From contig NC_087246.1 in the NCBI RefSeq assembly GCF_037042905.1, positions 35,898,001-35,962,000 on the forward strand: 64,000 nucleotides of DNA. The letters are read 5' to 3'. Position numbers and translations under genes: made by a program. The DNA is from Lytechinus pictus. Taxonomy: Eukaryota. The notes beneath the pieces were generated by a model. It saw nothing but the letters and a program-made list of their open reading frames with translations. It was not told the DNA's origin and searched no databases. Below, in pieces: positions 4,874 through 13,086 of the stretch; the first letter of the stretch is position 1, and every line of letters starts with the position of its first letter.

Positions 4874-6693
4874 TCAGTCTGTTTCACTAGACATGCTAGA
4901 TTCAACGGATGACGATTCGGCAGAGACAGACGAAGAACGTCTGAAACGAGCTGCAAGTAATGAAATATAATTGCAATCATTATTAACATACGAAGAAACT
5001 CCAATGATTAATCGGAATGCATATCATGTAAACATGGATATTTAACGATAATTTCTTTGAAATATTGTATATCGGTTTGTTTTTATCTTTTGGAAAAGGG
5101 GGAGATTATGATAACGACTTACGTTTGTTTGAAATGTGAATAATGAAGACCAGAAATTGTGTAAGAGAATTAAAACATTTGAAAATGTCATTGAGTTTAA
5201 CTATGATAAACTGAGAAGAGCAACAATCGAATATAGGAAGAGGGATCTTTTGCATTACATATCATAAATGTTTTTGGACGATGTCACAGAGTGTCAACGA
5301 AAGCAGCAAAAATCTTTATAAATGGCATTAGGGGATTTGAAGATATTACTTACCTGTAGAGGAACAGTCGACAACTTCAAGGCAAATTTTCTCCAAGATT
5401 TCACAGGCATCAGCGCTATTCTGCTCTCCTTCCTCTAGCAGACACACCATATCATTCTCAGCTTCATCGATGAGGTTCTGTTCAGTAGATGTAAGAAGTC
5501 CTCTTAGGTCTTCTTCACACGTGTCAACCACCAGCCTGTATATGTCACATAGGGCTTTGAACTGAGCAGTGCGATCGGTAGTCATGGTAGTTTGGGCTAG
5601 AAATGAAAGAAATTATCAAATCGTGACTTTTCGTAAAGTTTGTCTGTAAAACACATAACAAACTAGTGGCATATTGAGCCAAACGTTGAGGGGGCAAGAT
5701 ATGGGGTATCGGGAAAATTTTTTTTTTTTAAAGCTTAGAGAGAGCGAAGCAAGCGAGCATAAATTTTGAGATAATATTCAGAAAATAATATATTTCAACC
5801 TCCTCTCTTTCCCTTTAATTATTTCCTTTTCTCTTTTTATTTTCTTGGTCTTGGTTATTTGGGGGCAAGTGCCCCAAGACCCCCCCCCCTGTACGCCACT
5901 GTAACAATCATATATTCCAATTAAACAAAAATTATTGCACCTAAATAAACAAATTGACATGTTTTGTTGTGTAATGTGGAAACTCGCTGTCCTAACAATA
6001 TCAAAAGTTTTATGTCATTCCTCAAAATAGATGTATCATGCATGATGAAAGTCACGATAGAAACAGTACCCAAATGAGAAAGATATCTGCAAATTTCGAT
6101 AAATGCCTTTTTTTTCTCTATCAATTTTTAATTGAAAAATATACAAAAAAAATCCATACCTTTCACTCCCATTGCAAAAAATGCAACGATACACAAACAA
6201 ACGCAGAGTGCTTTTACCTGTAAAAGGGAAAAATTGAAGAAAAAAAAAATAATAACATGAACATTTTAAGAATTAATTGAAATTCGAAAGAAAAAAAAAA
6301 CAGGAATAAGAGTGATAATTAAATGGAATGAAATTGATATAGCATGAAAAAAATATAAAAATTGTAAAAAATCAATAAATATAAAGTTTATAATCCTAAT
6401 TCTTAATATAAATGGAATTTAATAGCATATACCATTGGCGGATCGGGGGACTGAAACAAAACGATATACCCCGACTTGTGATATCCAAGATAAAAATTCG
6501 GTGTATAATGCAGATTTCTATTTACGTATACAAACAAATTCACAAATAAATTAAAATCCATGTCATCAAATTTGCTCTTTTTTCTTTCAATATCTCTTTA
6601 AAATGCCTAAAAATTTAAAACTATAACTGCAGTTTGAATTGTTTCTGCTGGAATAATTTTTAAAAATAATGTTATACTTACCGATTGAGCCAT
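4874..6693 (-). CDS. Small secreted acidic Cys-rich proprotein, copy A (129 aa); exons 6682-6693, 6160-6217, 5354-5596, 4874-4950
   Basis: All introns GT-AG with phases 0,1,1 giving one frame: MAQSVKALCVCLCIVAFFAMGVKA-QTTMTTDRTAQFKALCDIYRLVVDTCEEDL...ICLEVVDCSSTA-RFRR-SSSVSAESSSVESSMSSETD*. The paralog has the same exon structure. Confidence 0.85.
5664..5901. mobile_element. Short hAT-like MITE in intron 2 of copy A
   Basis: Ends TAGTGGCATA / TACGCCACTG; near-perfect 8-bp TSD TAACAAAC / TAACAATC. Confidence 0.65.
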
Positions 6694-6785
6694 TTTCAGG
6701 AGTTTTGCTGAGCCGAGCGTTTTGAGAAAATAAAGTGTTATTTAGAACGCTGATGAATGAGTGATTAATGAAGATATTTTCTCCC

Positions 6786-6792
6786 TTTTATA
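6786..6792 (-). promoter_or_regulatory. TATA box of copy A
   Basis: TATAAAAGGGAG on the minus strand ~95 bp upstream of the ATG, followed by an Inr-like TCATTC; same arrangement in the paralog. Confidence 0.7.
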
Positions 6793-7260
6793 GTATTTGA
6801 AAGTAATCAAAATTTAGGTAGGAAATGTTTGGCTTTCAAGATAGCGAGATTGGATTATGACATAATATGACAGTGTAAGAATAGAACAAAAGGACATTTT
6901 ACATAATTTGTTTGTGATAGGTAAAACTGTCATTGCGAATTTCGTTACTAATTATATGCGTAATTAATATCTGTAGCAATTAAGATTAAGTTGACAGTTT
7001 GAAAGGCCAACATTAAGAGAAAATACAAAACGAGTGAACGACCAATAAATACCTTTCTTTGTGTTGAAATCCAAAGAAATTTTACGTAATTTGTTTGTGA
7101 AAGGTAAAACTGTCATACTGTATTTTGTTTTCCATTTATATGCATAATTCATTTATATTATTTAAATGAGGTTGGCAGTTTCAAAGGTAAAAAATTAAAA
7201 ATAAACTAATAAAACGAGTGAACAACCAACTAATTCGCTTGTGTTTAGAGCCAAGGACCC

Positions 7261-7287
7261 ACTCTCTCTCCCCTCTGTCTCTCTCCG

Positions 7288-7327
<40 letters not shown>

Positions 7328-7347
7328 GCGCGCGCGCGCGCGCGCGA
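7261..7347. repeat. Compound microsatellite (TC)n(CA)n(CG)n
   Basis: Read directly from the sequence. Confidence 0.95.
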
Positions 7348-9151
7348 GCCACTCAATCTTTCTCTCTCTCTCAATTTTGATTGACATGGTCTATTGTCTT
7401 GTTTCATTTACCTTTTAAAGTTATGATTGATATTAGCCGACAGTTTAACTATTGGCTATGCTATAGGAGTTGTATAGGACCTAATTCTTTCCATCATTTT
7501 TTTCTTTAACAGCTTAGTGCTTTGTATGTTTAATATTGAGGAATATTAGAATTAGATATACAAATAGTCCACGTAAATATATTAATATGTATTTAAAAAG
7601 TCTTATTTGTTAGTGTCTATTAAAATTCACCCATTACATAGGTTGATCACTTTTATGATTTTTCAATAAAATCGTGTTCTTTCTTTAATACATAAAACTT
7701 AACCAGTGGGTATACTCGAGATTAGAGCTAGATTTTGTGCATAATCCAATCAAAAGTGACATCTAGCACCATCAGTGGTGTAATGAGGGGCGCGTGCCCA
7801 CCCCCCCCCCCCCCAAAAAAAAAAAAAAAAAAAAAAAGAAGATAGAATATAAAAAAAAGTATAGAAAAAATCAGCAAGCCCCCCAAAATATGAAATAAAG
7901 TAAAATAAAATAAAAGCAGGGGAAAAGGGAGAGAAAGACCGGAAAAGAAAGAGAATTGTGGTTGGGGAAACGGATATATAAGGTTTTTTCAGAATTTGAT
8001 GATCATGAGACACAATTAGCTTGGGGCCTATGTGTTCACTCCTCCCGGAGCACGCATTGCGTGTTAAATTTGATACATATTCCCCTTCCAAAGTTCCAAC
8101 ATGTCCAAGGGGATTTGATGGCGCTTAAAACATTCCATTTTCAAATCAATATCAAATATTAATCCTCGCGCTTTGAACTCTCGTTATTCTATTCAGTGAC
8201 ATACGCATCTTTTTCATGATTTCCAAGCGCTTAACAATATTCCTTTTTTGGGACTGAATAAAAAAGCTCGCGCTTCATGCCTGCCTTTGTTTTTATAAAG
8301 ATTAATTCCAAAAGACAGTCCTTTCAAAATGCAAAAAAAAATCAGCTTACTCTTCGCGCTCGAATAATTTTTTTAATGAATTCTTAGAAACAGTCCTTAA
8401 AATGTGTCCCTTTCCAATCCTGTATAATTGTATCATTAATATCAAATAAAGTTTTATTCATAACACTATGCATTAATATTCATTTATCATACTGGGGCAC
8501 TGCTTTATAAGGAGGAACATACATATAAAAAGTAAAAGGAAAAAAAAAAGACTTCGATATAAGAAATAAAAGAATAAGGTCATCTGAAAAGTGGCTCTGA
8601 CACACCATCCGTTAAATCACCATTGATTCTAAAATTAAAAAAATGAACGACATAAGACCTCTTTGTATATACCCATTTCTTCGCAATGATTCATACTAGA
8701 CTAGAACACCAGTTAATTCGCTGTAATTTCAAATAAAAACATTGAAACAAGAGATCTGTCGCCAAATGACTCTCATTGTTTCGTTTACTTTCAAAGGTAA
8801 AGGAAACAAGATAATTAATAGACCGTGTCATTCACATTTAGGTGAGACTGAGGGAGAGAGAGAGAGTCCTTGGATTTCAACACAAACGTAGTAATTGGTC
8901 GTTCACTCGTTTTGTTTGTTTATTCTTTTAATTTTGACCTTTCAAACTGTCAACTTCATCTTATTGGTATAGATATTAATTACGCATATAATTAGTAACG
9001 AAATTCGTAATGACAGTTTTACCTATCACAAATGAATTACGTAAAAGTTTCTTTTGTTCTATTCTTAAACTGTCATAATCATGTCATATTTCAATCTCAC
9101 AATCGTGAAAGCCAAACATTTCCAACCTAAATTTCGATTATTTTGAAATAC

Positions 9152-9158
9152 TATAAAA
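9152..9158 (+). promoter_or_regulatory. TATA box of copy B
   Basis: TATAAAAGGGAG ~100 bp upstream of the ATG at 9252; Inr-like TCATTC at ~9180. Confidence 0.7.
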
Positions 9159-9251
9159 GGGAGAAAATAGTGTCTTTAATCATTCACTCAACAGCATTCG
9201 AAATAAATTTTTACCGTTTTTCAAAACGTTCGACTTAGCAAAACTCCTGAA

Positions 9252-12026
9252 ATGGCTCACTCAGTAAGTACACCATTATTTTTCGAACTATTCCTGCATG
9301 CAGAAACTGTTATTCAGTTTTTGCTTTAGCTTATTAAGAATATTAGGGATATGATGAAAAGAAAATGGAACGAATTTGAAAACATGGATATTTATTTCTT
9401 TCTGAAATTGTTTTCAGTGAAATAGAAATACAAATTGAAATCTGTATACCAGAGGTTGATCTAGGATCTCACAAGTCAGGGTAACTATAGCTATTTAAAT
9501 TCAGTTTTCTTGTCTCCCGATCCACCAATGGTTTGTGCTATTAAATTCAATTTATCTTAATCATGTCACCATTTTCTGTTCGACATTATAAATGCAAGTA
9601 TATCTATCATATTGGTAAAGGATTATCAGTTGTTGGTTCTTTTTTTTTCTTTCCATAATTTTCAATCTGTATTCGTTTTCATGATTCATGATTTTACTCA
9701 TTTTTTGTATTCCCCCTTTTCCGGGTGCAATTGCATTCCCTTGTGTGATTTCTTTGTAAAAAAAAAAGAAACTGCTAAATTGAATGAATGAATGAATGAA
9801 TGAATGAGCGAAATTGATCCGGCCACATCCTTAAATTTGTCTGCAAGAAAGATGGTCTCATCTAATTATTTAACTTCAATTGATACTATAATTTATGTAA
9901 TCATTTAAACTGTGATTGTAGAGTATACAAAACGAATCAGATATTTTATTCATTTTCCCCCTCTATATACAGGTAAAAACACTCTGCGTCTGTCTGTGTC
10001 TCTTTGCATTTTTTGCAATGGATATCAAAGGTACAGAAACTTTCTATTTCTTATTTTTCATTGAAAATAAGAGAGATATAAGAGGTATTTGTCGAAATTT
10101 GCATAATGTTGTTCACTTGGGTATGTTTCTATCTATATGTGTTCCCTTAAAAATCGCTTATGTACATGATAAGTCTATTTGGGCTGATGGCTTCACGTTT
10201 AAACTCTTCACGTTCAGACTGAACGATTTTCCACATTACAAATCAAAATTTGCTCATCTGTACGTTTTGGTGCCATTATTTTATGTTTTATTATGATTAT
10301 AATTCCTCACCGATCATTAAGAAAAACAATACAAGTTCGATGTTTGGCATATGTGTTACTGTTAAATTCAATGAAAACCCCATGATTTGATAATTCCTTG
10401 ATTTCTAGCCCAAACTACCGATCGCACTGCACAGTTCGAAGCCCTATGTGACAGATACAGGCAGGTGGTTGACACGTGTGAAGAAGACCTAAGAGGACTT
10501 CTTACATCTACTGAACATGTATTATTTGATGAAGCTGAGAATGATATGGTGTGTTTGGTAGAGGAAGGAGAGCAGGAAAGCGCCGATGCCTGTGAAATCT
10601 TGGAAAAAATTTGCCTTGAAGTCGTCGACTGTTCCTCTACAGGTGAGTTTAATCGTCGAATCCGCTACAGTTTGGATCTCTTACACCAGTTGCATACGCA
10701 GGATTTTTGAAAAGGGGGAGGGTTCAAGCTGAATGAAATGTTGACACCCCCCCCCCCAAAAAAAAAGAAGGTTTAACCCCAAGTTTTAGGTCGTTTCATA
10801 CAAAAAAATGACAAAAGAGGTCTTCATTTTTTACACTGTGACATCGTCCAAAAGCATTATATGTATGAAGATCCATCCACTAATAGTACTCTGTATGTCA
10901 TTATTATCATTAATGTGACCTTTCATCAGAATTATCTTTTCTTTATCGTGACCAGCATTTTTGTTCTCTTTATACAATTTCTCGTCTTCTGTATAGTATC
11001 AAAGAAAACGTAATCTATTACAATCACACCGACAAACAATATCTTGTGTTTGTACGGGGATAAGGTTCTAATTTTCGTGTGTACGAGTGAAGGGAGAGTG
11101 AGAGGGAAAGCGAGAGAGAGAGGGAGAGAAGGAATTGGGGCGGGGGATCCTTCAGCTGCTTGTCCTCATTCTAGTCCGATTTCTTTATTTTGGTTTCTGT
11201 TCTCCTTTTCTTTAGGGCGGTCTTTTTTGTTTCTATCTCGGCGCTTCCCTCTTGAAAACTTTTAGATAATAATAATCTTATATCTGCCTTTTTTTATTGT
11301 AATGTTTCCTGATTTTATGCTTTTTCATCATACTAATCATTTGTAAATATTGTGATTGTTATGATTTATTTCAATAAAAACTTAAATATAAAAAAAAATC
11401 TTAAGGTAATAAATTTGAAAAATACAATGATGATCAGTATTAGTTCATTTGGTATAATTATTAACATCAGCCTCGTTATATAATCATTTTAATCATTTTT
11501 TTAATGATATCATTATCCTTATGGGTATTAATAGAAATTGTTTTTTTTTCTATGACTCACACTCTAAAAACTTTAACCAATATTGGGTAAAATGGGAACA
11601 TACATGCTTGTTGGGTAAAAAGATATCAAATATTTGGTAAATTGTACGCAATGTTGCGTTGAAATTTACCCTTCAAACATGCATTATGCCCAATATTGGG
11701 GAAAAATTACCCAGCAAACATGCATGTTCCCATTCTACCAAGCAATATTGGGTAATTTTTTTTTCTCTCTGTTTTTAGAGTGTATCATATCTAATATCCT
11801 CTTCATCATTTTTACTTCAATGAATCAATATTTTTTATCGTTCATATAGAGAATGGATCGATATTTAAGATATGCATTCAGATTAATTTTACATGTAAGG
11901 AATTTCTTGAATGTATTTTGATTTTTATCATCAATCGTTTTTTTTTCATTACTTTCAGCTCGTTTTAGACGTTCTTCGTCTGTCTCTGCCGAATCGTCAT
12001 CCGTTGAATCTAGTGAAACAGACTGA
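9252..12026 (+). CDS. Small secreted acidic Cys-rich proprotein, copy B (123 aa); exons 9252-9263, 9973-10030, 10409-10642, 11959-12026
   Basis: GT-AG introns, phases 0,1,1: MAHSVKTLCVCLCLFAFFAMDIKA-QTTDRTAQFEALCDRYRQVVDTCEEDL...ICLEVVDCSSTA-RFRR-SSSVSAESSSVESSETD*. AATAAA at ~12512 is shared with the paralog. Confidence 0.85.
11560..11782. mobile_element. CACT-ended (CACTA/EnSpm-like) MITE in intron 3 of copy B
   Basis: TIR CACTCTAAAAAC / GTTTTTAGAGTG; internal inverted copies of CAATATTGGG..AAAATGGGAACAT. Confidence 0.7.
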
Positions 12027-13086
12027 GGAGGTCATCGCAGGTCAAAGGTCGAAACTCAGAACACCCATTATCCCTGAGAACTGGAGCAAAGAGATCTCAA
12101 ATCATTGAATTAATTGAAATATTTATATCAAACTCACCGAATAACCTTTCTGTACGATGTATCGGTAACATTACCAAAAGTAGGCGTTCAATCATGATTA
12201 AATTTTCCACTAAATATATTAATCAAAGTCTATCGATAATATTCGAAAAGACGTTCTGTATCATAATTACGCCATCATTTTATTAAGCTATTGGAGACAT
12301 TGAAATCTATGTTCTATTTCAAATGCAATTGGTAGATGGGAAACGGCATATCCATTCATTCCAAAGTAATGTAAATTGAAATAAAATGAAACAGGTTACT
12401 AATTTTCACTATGTGAATACATGACGCTTTGCCTTTTTTTATAATGTGTATGGTGATCACCTTTAAGATGCTGTTTTATAATATATCTTTACTTGATGAA
12501 TGTCATATTTAAATAAAATTCTAAGCAAATATTGAAGAATCTAATTTGATTTGATTTGATTTTATTTGGCAAGTCACCATAACATATATACAGTAGCATT
12601 AAAACAACAGGCTTGCACAGGATGACCCACGAAAGCTCGAAAGCTTATTTCCAGTGGGGTCCTCAATATACAGAATTAAGATAATAAAATGTTAAAATTA
12701 TACTATTTACATATTAAAAATGAAGAAAAAAATCAGAATATTTACTATTACCAATAAATAAGATATATAGACAATAAATAAGATATATACAAGAATATAA
12801 CGAAGAAGAAGAAGAAAAGAAGGAGAAGGAAGAGGAGGAACAGAAGAAGAGAGGGGACGAGGAGTAGAAGGAGACGGAAGAAACTGATAACGAAGGGAAA
12901 TAAATAAGGAGAAGAACAACAGCATAAACGTGACGACAATAACAACAAGAAGAGGAGAATAGGAAGAAATAAAAGAAATAGAAAGAATAGAAGAAAGGAC
13001 ATATCGAAGCTTCAATCAAACTATGTAAAATACATAATAATACCTAGTAGAGAAGAGAAAAGAACTAGGTCAGTATTCAGGCTAAA

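Follow-up and report, generated by a model that had tools for sequence, protein, structure and literature searches.

We describe two genes, A and B, that lie head to head in a 64,000-nucleotide (nt) stretch of the genome of the sea urchin Lytechinus pictus (contig NC_087246.1, positions 35,898,001 to 35,962,000; referred to below as the window) and that belong to a family of small, acidic, apparently secreted proproteins found so far only in sea urchins. Each predicted protein comprises a signal-peptide-like N terminus, an acidic core with six cysteines, the tetrapeptide R-F-R-R, and a short tail in which serines occupy alternate positions ahead of glutamate, an arrangement that suggests a precursor cut to release a phosphorylated peptide. 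Sequence comparisons between species and between two old paralog groups indicate that purifying selection has preserved the open frame, the exon plan, the cysteines, the A-R-[FY]-R-R motif, and the (Ser-x)n-Glu tail.

Gene models, protein architecture, and spliced transcripts

Both gene models were rebuilt from the letters of the window by joining exons in open frames across GT..AG introns. Gene A (LOC129280709) occupies 4874..6693 on the minus strand and has exons at 6693-6682, 6217-6160, 5596-5354, and 4950-4874 (390 nt, 129 amino acids [aa]); gene B (LOC129272279) occupies 9252..12026 on the plus strand and also has four exons, at 9252-9263, 9973-10030, 10409-10642, and 11959-12026 (372 nt, 123 aa). 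All six introns are of the GT..AG type, the phases are 0/1/1 in each gene, and both ATGs have an A at -3 and a G at +4. The coding sequences of A and B differ by 31 substitutions and exactly two indels, each of 9 nt and in frame. The six-frame list of open reading frames (ORFs) holds pieces of exon 3 alone, such as 5346-5585 on the minus strand and 10465-10710 on the plus strand, and a search of the rest of the window for more copies found none besides A and B.

An initial annotation of this DNA had described a hidden pair of four-exon genes, fragmented in the ORF track, that differ by two in-frame 9-nt indels and keep their splice sites, cysteines, and RFRR. The rebuilt models, the ORF list, and the comparison of coding sequences agree with that description except for two of its words. 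The genes are not hidden, as both loci are already annotated in RefSeq as genes for uncharacterized proteins, and they are not a pair but part of a larger array, which has at least 15 LOC identifiers (see below). The gene A protein is identical letter for letter to RefSeq uncharacterized protein LOC129280709 of L. pictus (P0005), and on CM073227.1 (GCA_037042905.1) the gene spans 35,902,874-35,904,693, window position 1 being base 35,898,001. The RefSeq product of gene B (P0016, 104 aa) starts at an internal Met at 10018 and has no signal peptide. An RNA contig that joins exon 1 (9252-9263) to exon 2 supports the 123-aa form of LOC129272279 and marks P0016 as N-terminally truncated.

The N termini of both proteins look, by eye, like signal peptides: a short charged n-region is followed by a 14-residue hydrophobic core and by V-K-A|Q, which satisfies the -3/-1 rule. 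The acidic core (78 to 81 residues, 19 to 21 of them Asp or Glu; isoelectric point of about 4.05) has the same Cys spacing in both genes, C-x9-C-x24-C-x12-C-x6-C-x5-C, and the conserved Cys pattern implies an oxidizing compartment. Exon 3 encodes the entire mature 6-Cys core; it lies at 5354..5596 on the minus strand in gene A (80 full codons, 5355-5594, from the translation and alignments) and at 10409..10642 on the plus strand in gene B (77 full codons, 10411-10641, from the translation). Beyond the core, both proteins continue with A-R-F-R-R and then with a tail of 20 aa in A or 17 aa in B. The R-F-R-R codons stand at the start of exon 4, at 4937..4948 (minus strand) in gene A and at 11961..11972 (plus strand) in gene B, and they match R-X-[K/R]-R, the furin-type proprotein-convertase consensus. 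The tails (4877..4936 on the minus strand in A and 11973..12023 on the plus strand in B) consist of Ser, Val, Ala, Glu, Thr, and Asp, with the serines arranged in (S-x)n-E cassettes. Fam20C, the Golgi casein kinase, has the specificity S-x-E/pS (where pS is phosphoserine); each tail contains 3 direct S-x-E sites, and 7 Ser in A and 6 in B would be reachable by S-x-pS priming. The architecture claimed in the initial annotation is real, with the signal peptide assigned by inspection.

For transcription, four sequencing runs, comprising two contig sets (X2 and X3) and two raw transcriptome sequencing (RNA-Seq) runs (X21 and X22), were mapped onto window positions 6150-12149. As had been predicted, RNA crosses the splice junctions of gene B: all three joints (9263>9973, 10030>10409, and 10642>11959) were present in RNA-library contigs of run X2 exactly as modeled, and one 177-nt X2 contig linked the 5′ untranslated region and exon 1 to exon 3 by way of exon 2. 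The intron-3 joint was seen independently in run X3, which comes from a separate study. Word depth in X2 was 80 to 250 over the exons (140 to 250 over exon 3 of gene B) and zero over the introns apart from a repeat, a distribution that points to spliced RNA rather than contaminating DNA. RNA contigs had loose ends at 10517 and 10525, where they switched from the sequence of gene B (TEHVLF) to that of another paralog (TEQNLF), which indicates that several family members are expressed together. The break points (10517-10525) coincide with the most variable patch of the protein, between the second and third cysteines (C2 and C3).

An amplified gene family in sea urchins

Cluster look-ups returned at least 15 LOC identifiers of the 6-Cys type for L. 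pictus, at least 6 for Lytechinus variegatus, and at least 11 for Strongylocentrotus purpuratus, all named uncharacterized. The located L. pictus members lie at about 35.81-35.91 Mb of the same chromosome in mixed orientations, forming an array of roughly 100 kb of which genes A and B are the last two at one end; a further copy lies just left of the window. S. purpuratus carries six direct tandem copies over about 33.5 kb (AAGJ06000002.1, 31.298-31.332 Mb; L001/L002), with gaps of 6.2 to 8.2 kb (6.2 to 6.5 kb in four of the five). These copies have exon lengths of 12, 58, 234, and 71, phases matching those in L. pictus, and ARFRR and tail intact in all six. The L. pictus array (L005-L008) is by comparison a mixture of head-to-head and tail-to-tail copies at irregular spacing, and its difference from the regular direct array of S. 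purpuratus implies inversions after the two species split.

More distant members were recovered as well. The full HMMER profile search found an exon-3 fragment (P0008) from a more divergent urchin, 43% identical, on a contig whose exon 4 encodes ARFRR and a 20-residue Ser/Thr/Glu tail. A deep group of 4-Cys paralogs comprises LOC129281776 and LOC129281758 in L. pictus (6.6 Mb from genes A and B), LOC121406863 in L. variegatus, and LOC100890685 and LOC105442472 in S. purpuratus. The 4-Cys gene has the four-exon plan, the phases 0/1/1, and the intron directly before the Ala of ARFRR, all as in the 6-Cys type, and these shared features show that the two groups are homologous. Across 1.84 billion representatives, the HMMER profile search returned only urchin proteins and two repetitive false positives (P0009 and P0010), and a profile word search of 5.8 billion proteins added no further taxa. 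The searchable full-text literature mentioned none of 24 exact LOC identifiers of the family, none of six LOC-identifier prefixes, and none of its peptide strings, those of the tail included. The parts are individually familiar; their combination, the amplification of the genes, and the conserved putative phosphorylation register are not described in the searchable literature.

Identity between A and B is 90 to 100% in the exons and about 78% in the promoter and intron 1; introns 2 and 3 can for the most part no longer be aligned (blastn). The ratio of nonsynonymous to synonymous substitution rates (dN/dS) is 0.40 for A versus B, with no nonsynonymous change in the tail. For L. pictus gene B versus an S. 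purpuratus copy, the overall ratio is 0.36, with 0.30 for the core and 0.25 for ARFRR and the tail combined. Spliced RNA, the same open frames in dozens of paralogs and orthologs, and the dN/dS values of 0.40 and 0.36 together establish these as real genes, beyond chance. In exon 4, the synonymous rate (dS) is about 3-fold below that of the core (0.30 versus 1.03, from few sites; L. pictus gene B 11959-12026 versus S. purpuratus L001 11928-11998), for which a codon-level or RNA-level constraint or gene conversion is a possible explanation.

Conservation by position was read from an alignment of 16 members drawn from both subfamilies. Invariant or nearly so were C1, C2, C4, C5, the motif D-A/S-C-E-[IV]-L-E, E-E-G, A-R-x-R-R, and the terminal S-S-E. 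The 4-Cys group has other residues at both C3 and C6, and this joint loss points to a disulfide between them; C3 probably pairs with C6. All full-length members of the two subfamilies carry R-F-R-R or R-Y-R-R, as does the contig of the more divergent urchin, and the AlphaFold models predict a coil at this site, beyond the last structured element. The initial annotation had made its reading depend on conservation of RFRR and S-x-E in orthologs; both are kept in S. purpuratus, in L. variegatus, in the more divergent urchin, and in the deep paralogs.

In every member, the serines of the tail form (S-x)n-E cassettes. The 6-Cys tails of Lytechinus and S. purpuratus read S-x-S-x-S-x-E, S-x-S-x-E, and S-x-E, and the tail of the more divergent urchin reads S-x-S-x-E and then S-x-S-x-S-x-E twice. 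The 4-Cys tails are a single unbroken run of 9 or 10 alternate serines that ends in S-x-E, with intervening residues (N, T, A, D, G, or S) that vary by species. A tail has 3 or 4 direct S-x-E sites if it is of the 6-Cys type and 1 if it is of the 4-Cys type, with 6 to 10 of its serines in register. The number of serines reachable from S-x-E by stepwise S-x-pS priming was compared with that in 20,000 composition-preserving shuffles of each tail; it exceeded the shuffled values at a P value of 0.0003 to 0.0014 in the three most diverged tails and of 0.03 to 0.07 in the others. The sequence of the tail thus drifts between lineages while the alternate-Ser register is kept, and a conserved register of this kind fits the signature expected of hierarchical Fam20C-type phosphorylation.

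Fold searches, proposed processing, and alternative explanations

The proteins matched no characterized family in Pfam, HMMER, PDB profile, Foldseek, or structure scan searches, as the initial annotation had suspected. Pfam gave no match to the L. pictus core exons or full-length proteins, and the best result of a PDB sequence profile search was a bicaudal-D coiled coil at an E value of 0.08, which is noise. AlphaFold run with 7 full-length sequences gave an unusable model (predicted local distance difference test [pLDDT] of 44); run with 14 mature sequences, it reached a pLDDT of 67.6 overall and 70 to 79 in the core. The core model consists of four short helices, a beta-hairpin, a helix, and a strand, with RFRR and the tail unstructured. 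Foldseek searches with this model found no significant match in PDB, AFDB clusters, Swiss-Prot, or ESM Atlas. The best rows from the AFDB clusters (ranks 1 and 6) bore A0A7M7-type accessions given without an organism; in the cluster look-ups, accessions of this series are those of S. purpuratus, and an origin of the two rows in that species is our guess. Winged-helix look-alikes in the structure searches were weak and were rejected.

A scan of PDB independent of Foldseek placed granulysin, NK-lysin, and saposin D at the top, with Z scores of 2.3 to 3.2, far below the noise level of the tool. These saposin-like (SAPLIP) domains resemble the family in having about 78 residues, six cysteines, and a mainly helical structure. 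The saposin Cys pattern is C-x2-C ... C-x5-C, with pairs C1-C6, C2-C5, and C3-C4; the x9/x24/x12/x6/x5 spacing of the urchin core differs from it, the joint loss of C3 and C6 points to a pairing unlike that scheme, and the family model contains a beta-hairpin. With a best Z score of 3.2 and no Foldseek hit, a saposin-like assignment was rejected.

The account that we prefer, with moderate confidence, is that these proteins, members of an array family found so far only in urchins, are convertase-cut precursors that release a multiply phosphorylated tail. The nascent protein would enter the endoplasmic reticulum cotranslationally and lose its signal peptide after V-K-A, leaving an N-terminal Gln, and the core of 78 to 81 residues would fold oxidatively with three disulfides. 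A Fam20C-type kinase in the Golgi would then prime the Ser two residues before each Glu, and phosphorylation would spread N-terminally along the S-x-S-x-S register to about 6 to 10 phosphates per tail. A furin-like convertase would cut after R-[FY]-R-R, encoded at the very start of exon 4, and yield two products, a disulfide-bonded acidic domain and a polyanionic phosphopeptide of 17 to 23 residues. The kinase needed for such a pathway is known from urchins: S. purpuratus has two Fam20C genes (PMC5865150), fam20C is a direct target of Alx1 in urchin skeletogenic cells (PMC7719703), and in the urchin matrix, where Fam20C protein was found in both test and tooth of S. purpuratus, the majority of mapped extracellular phosphosites are of the casein-kinase type (PMC2830187).

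Several points weigh against this precursor account. Secretion, cleavage, and phosphorylation of the family members are all read from sequence, and the AlphaFold model is of only moderate confidence. The tails that entered the shuffling test come from lineages that are not fully independent, and the alternation of serines could in part be a legacy of short-repeat expansion. The initial annotation had pointed to skeletal, tooth, and adhesive (phospho)proteomes as a place to find the tail peptide; the tail strings were absent from the supplements of the S. purpuratus test and tooth phosphoproteome and of the spicule-matrix proteome. As those studies searched older gene models and skeletal matrices only, this is a weak negative; it makes a function as a protein occluded in the skeletal matrix slightly less likely. 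Practically no reads fell on the exons in two deep raw RNA-Seq runs labeled L. pictus (X21 and X22); set beside the covered exons of X2, these nearly empty runs indicate that expression is strongly sample specific.

Four other explanations were weighed against the precursor account. The core could itself be the active product, a Cys-rich secreted signal (hormone, pheromone, or cytokine-like factor) from which the tail is removed at RFRR as a C-terminal propiece. A small prepro-protein layout with a convertase site and the sample-specific expression are what one would expect of such a signal, and language-model features place the proteins nearest, among named clusters, to 6-Cys neurohormones of arthropods, namely eclosion hormone and crustacean hyperglycemic hormone (CHH), at 0.61 to 0.66. 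These scores are not above the chance range of the tool, however, and neither Pfam profile (Eclosion or Crust_neurohorm; PF04736 or PF01147) matched even at E values up to 10. Although eclosion hormone and CHH/ITP are likewise small secreted 6-Cys proteins, their Cys spacing differs and they have neither an acidic Ser tail nor tandem arrays, and both were rejected as relatives. Hormone genes rarely stand in arrays of 11 to 15 or more nearly identical copies, the core is strongly acidic, there is no amidation signal, and the supposed propiece is the best-conserved part of the protein, its register being kept even where its sequence is not. We consider a signal of this kind unlikely. It is a little less probable still that RFRR stays uncut and that the protein is secreted whole, with the tail kept on as an acidic, phosphorylated, or glycosylated extension that could, for instance, anchor the folded domain to mineral or to a surface. 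Many R-x-R-R motifs do escape processing, Ser/Thr-rich tails can be O-glycosylated, and N-x-S/T sequons occur in some tails (as N-S-T in 4-Cys members and in the more divergent urchin), but AR[FY]RR has barely changed in two old subfamilies while its flanking residues vary, and its place in the predicted unstructured stretch is that expected of an accessible site.

A fast-evolving defense or reproductive effector family, in which dosage and diversity matter and the tail is secondary, would account for a large lineage-restricted array with inversions, for paralog diversification concentrated between C2 and C3, for the microsatellites in the spacer, and for the joint expression of several paralogs (loose ends at 10517 and 10525). 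It appears improbable, since dN/dS values of 0.3 to 0.4 give no overall sign of positive selection, the copies in S. purpuratus have hardly diverged from one another, and the products are anionic, unlike known urchin antimicrobial peptides. Least credible of all is membership in the syntaxin-5 N-terminal, Sly1-binding family, as the UniProt name of the S. purpuratus orthologs would have it (P0006/P0015, Syntaxin-5 N-terminal Sly1p-binding domain-containing protein). Two S. purpuratus proteins do match Pfam PF11416 (Syntaxin-5_N) above its cutoff, at 17.8 to 18.3 bits versus 16.6, which explains the name; the match covers just 12 residues (28-39, D-R-T-x-E-F), has an E value of about 0.001 to 0.002, and is missing from the proteins of L. 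pictus. The motif sits in a Cys-rich domain directly after the signal peptide, which would place it on the luminal side, and the proteins, at 123 to 129 aa (124 aa for the S. purpuratus form), have no SNARE domain and no C-terminal hydrophobic segment that could serve as a membrane anchor. We therefore rejected this assignment, and the name is almost certainly an annotation artifact. Whatever the function of the family, the analysis corrects a truncated RefSeq model and flags a misleading syntaxin-5 label in S. purpuratus.

As to what the proposed precursor might do, the high copy number, the TATA promoters, and expression that is either on or off suggest that a specialized secretory cell type makes it in bulk. 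Its most probable function is to handle cations or mineral outside the cell, or else to serve as a structural or defense secretion; that of a classical hormone is less likely. The binding of Ca and the part in biomineralization or adhesion that the initial annotation proposed are inferences. Within the precursor account, a mineral- or Ca-handling role is our leading guess and a tentative one. Equally tentative is the idea that the last exon is a portable module of convertase site plus (Ser-x)n-Glu, giving rise to a new class of small extracellular polyphosphopeptides for handling CaCO3 or amorphous carbonate, or for a Ca-dependent signal, and cosecreted with a novel disulfide-bonded acidic fold.

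Known systems offer partial parallels. The vertebrate Fam20C mineral substrates (caseins and other SCPPs, osteopontin, SIBLING ASARM peptides, matrix Gla protein [MGP], and statherin) are, like the urchin family, secretory and acidic, with serines clustered in the S-x-E/pS register, and DSPP, MEPE, and MGP are proteolysed near basic residues into separate products, much as proposed here. There is nevertheless no relationship of sequence, fold, or gene family between the two. Unlike these vertebrate proteins, the urchin family has about 100 mature residues and a folded 6-Cys domain, is confined to urchins in 11 to 15 or more copies, and is known from sequence. Closer to hand, the sea urchin skeletal phosphoproteins phosphodontin and P16 (Mann et al. 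2010, PMC2830187) come from the same organisms and are acidic and Ser rich with casein-kinase-type sites, in matrices that contain Fam20C; they show no sequence similarity to the family, and phosphodontin is long and repetitive rather than a small Cys-rich proprotein. The granins, 7B2, and proSAAS share with the family a signal peptide, an acidic composition of the heat-stable type, and R-x-x-R processing that frees a short C-terminal peptide, and granins are substrates of Golgi kinases. No homology to them was detected, and they differ in being single-copy neuroendocrine genes whose C-terminal peptides are basic convertase inhibitors and not poly-Ser/Glu.

If the proposed processing holds, the family would be an independently evolved invertebrate counterpart of the secreted phosphopeptides of vertebrates, such as casein phosphopeptides, ASARM, and statherin. 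It would stand in a leading model of CaCO3 biomineralization, in which Fam20C is wired into the skeletogenic network and few of its substrates are known. The family also allows the S-x-E/pS code to be studied in a clean natural experiment, with a tail whose sequence drifts around a fixed alternate-Ser register.

Promoters, spacer, and a repeat in gene B

The promoter, 5′ flank, and intron 1 of gene A (6403..7281, minus strand) align to 8844-9560 of gene B at about 78 to 79% identity, as an inverted duplication (blastn). Each gene has a TATA box, TATAAAAG, about 95 nt upstream of its ATG, at 6785..6792 on the minus strand in gene A and at 9153..9160 on the plus strand in gene B, identified in an alignment of the two promoters with those of the S. 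purpuratus copies. The TATAAAAG box and a start-site-like block, TCATTCACTCA, are common to the promoters of A and B (6800-7080 and 8900-9120) and of the S. purpuratus copies. Repeated TGACAG/CTGTCA motifs, which resemble TALE-homeodomain sites, also occur in these promoters, one of them inside a block conserved between both species. No palindromic site of the Paired class (Alx1 type) was found in the promoter, where it was looked for by eye only. In the spacer between the divergent promoters lie a (CT)n(CA)n(CG)n compound microsatellite and a tract of poly-C/poly-A (7258-7382 and 7787-7923), both of which were left out of the read mapping as repeats.

Intron 3 of gene B harbors, at 11566-11762, a palindromic element that resembles a miniature inverted-repeat transposable element, with arms at 11586-11618 and 11707-11739 (33 nt, 88% complementary). 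In each of the four runs, this element was covered about 10-fold by RNA reads that showed many mismatches and loose ends, a pattern that indicates a multicopy repeat transcribed elsewhere.

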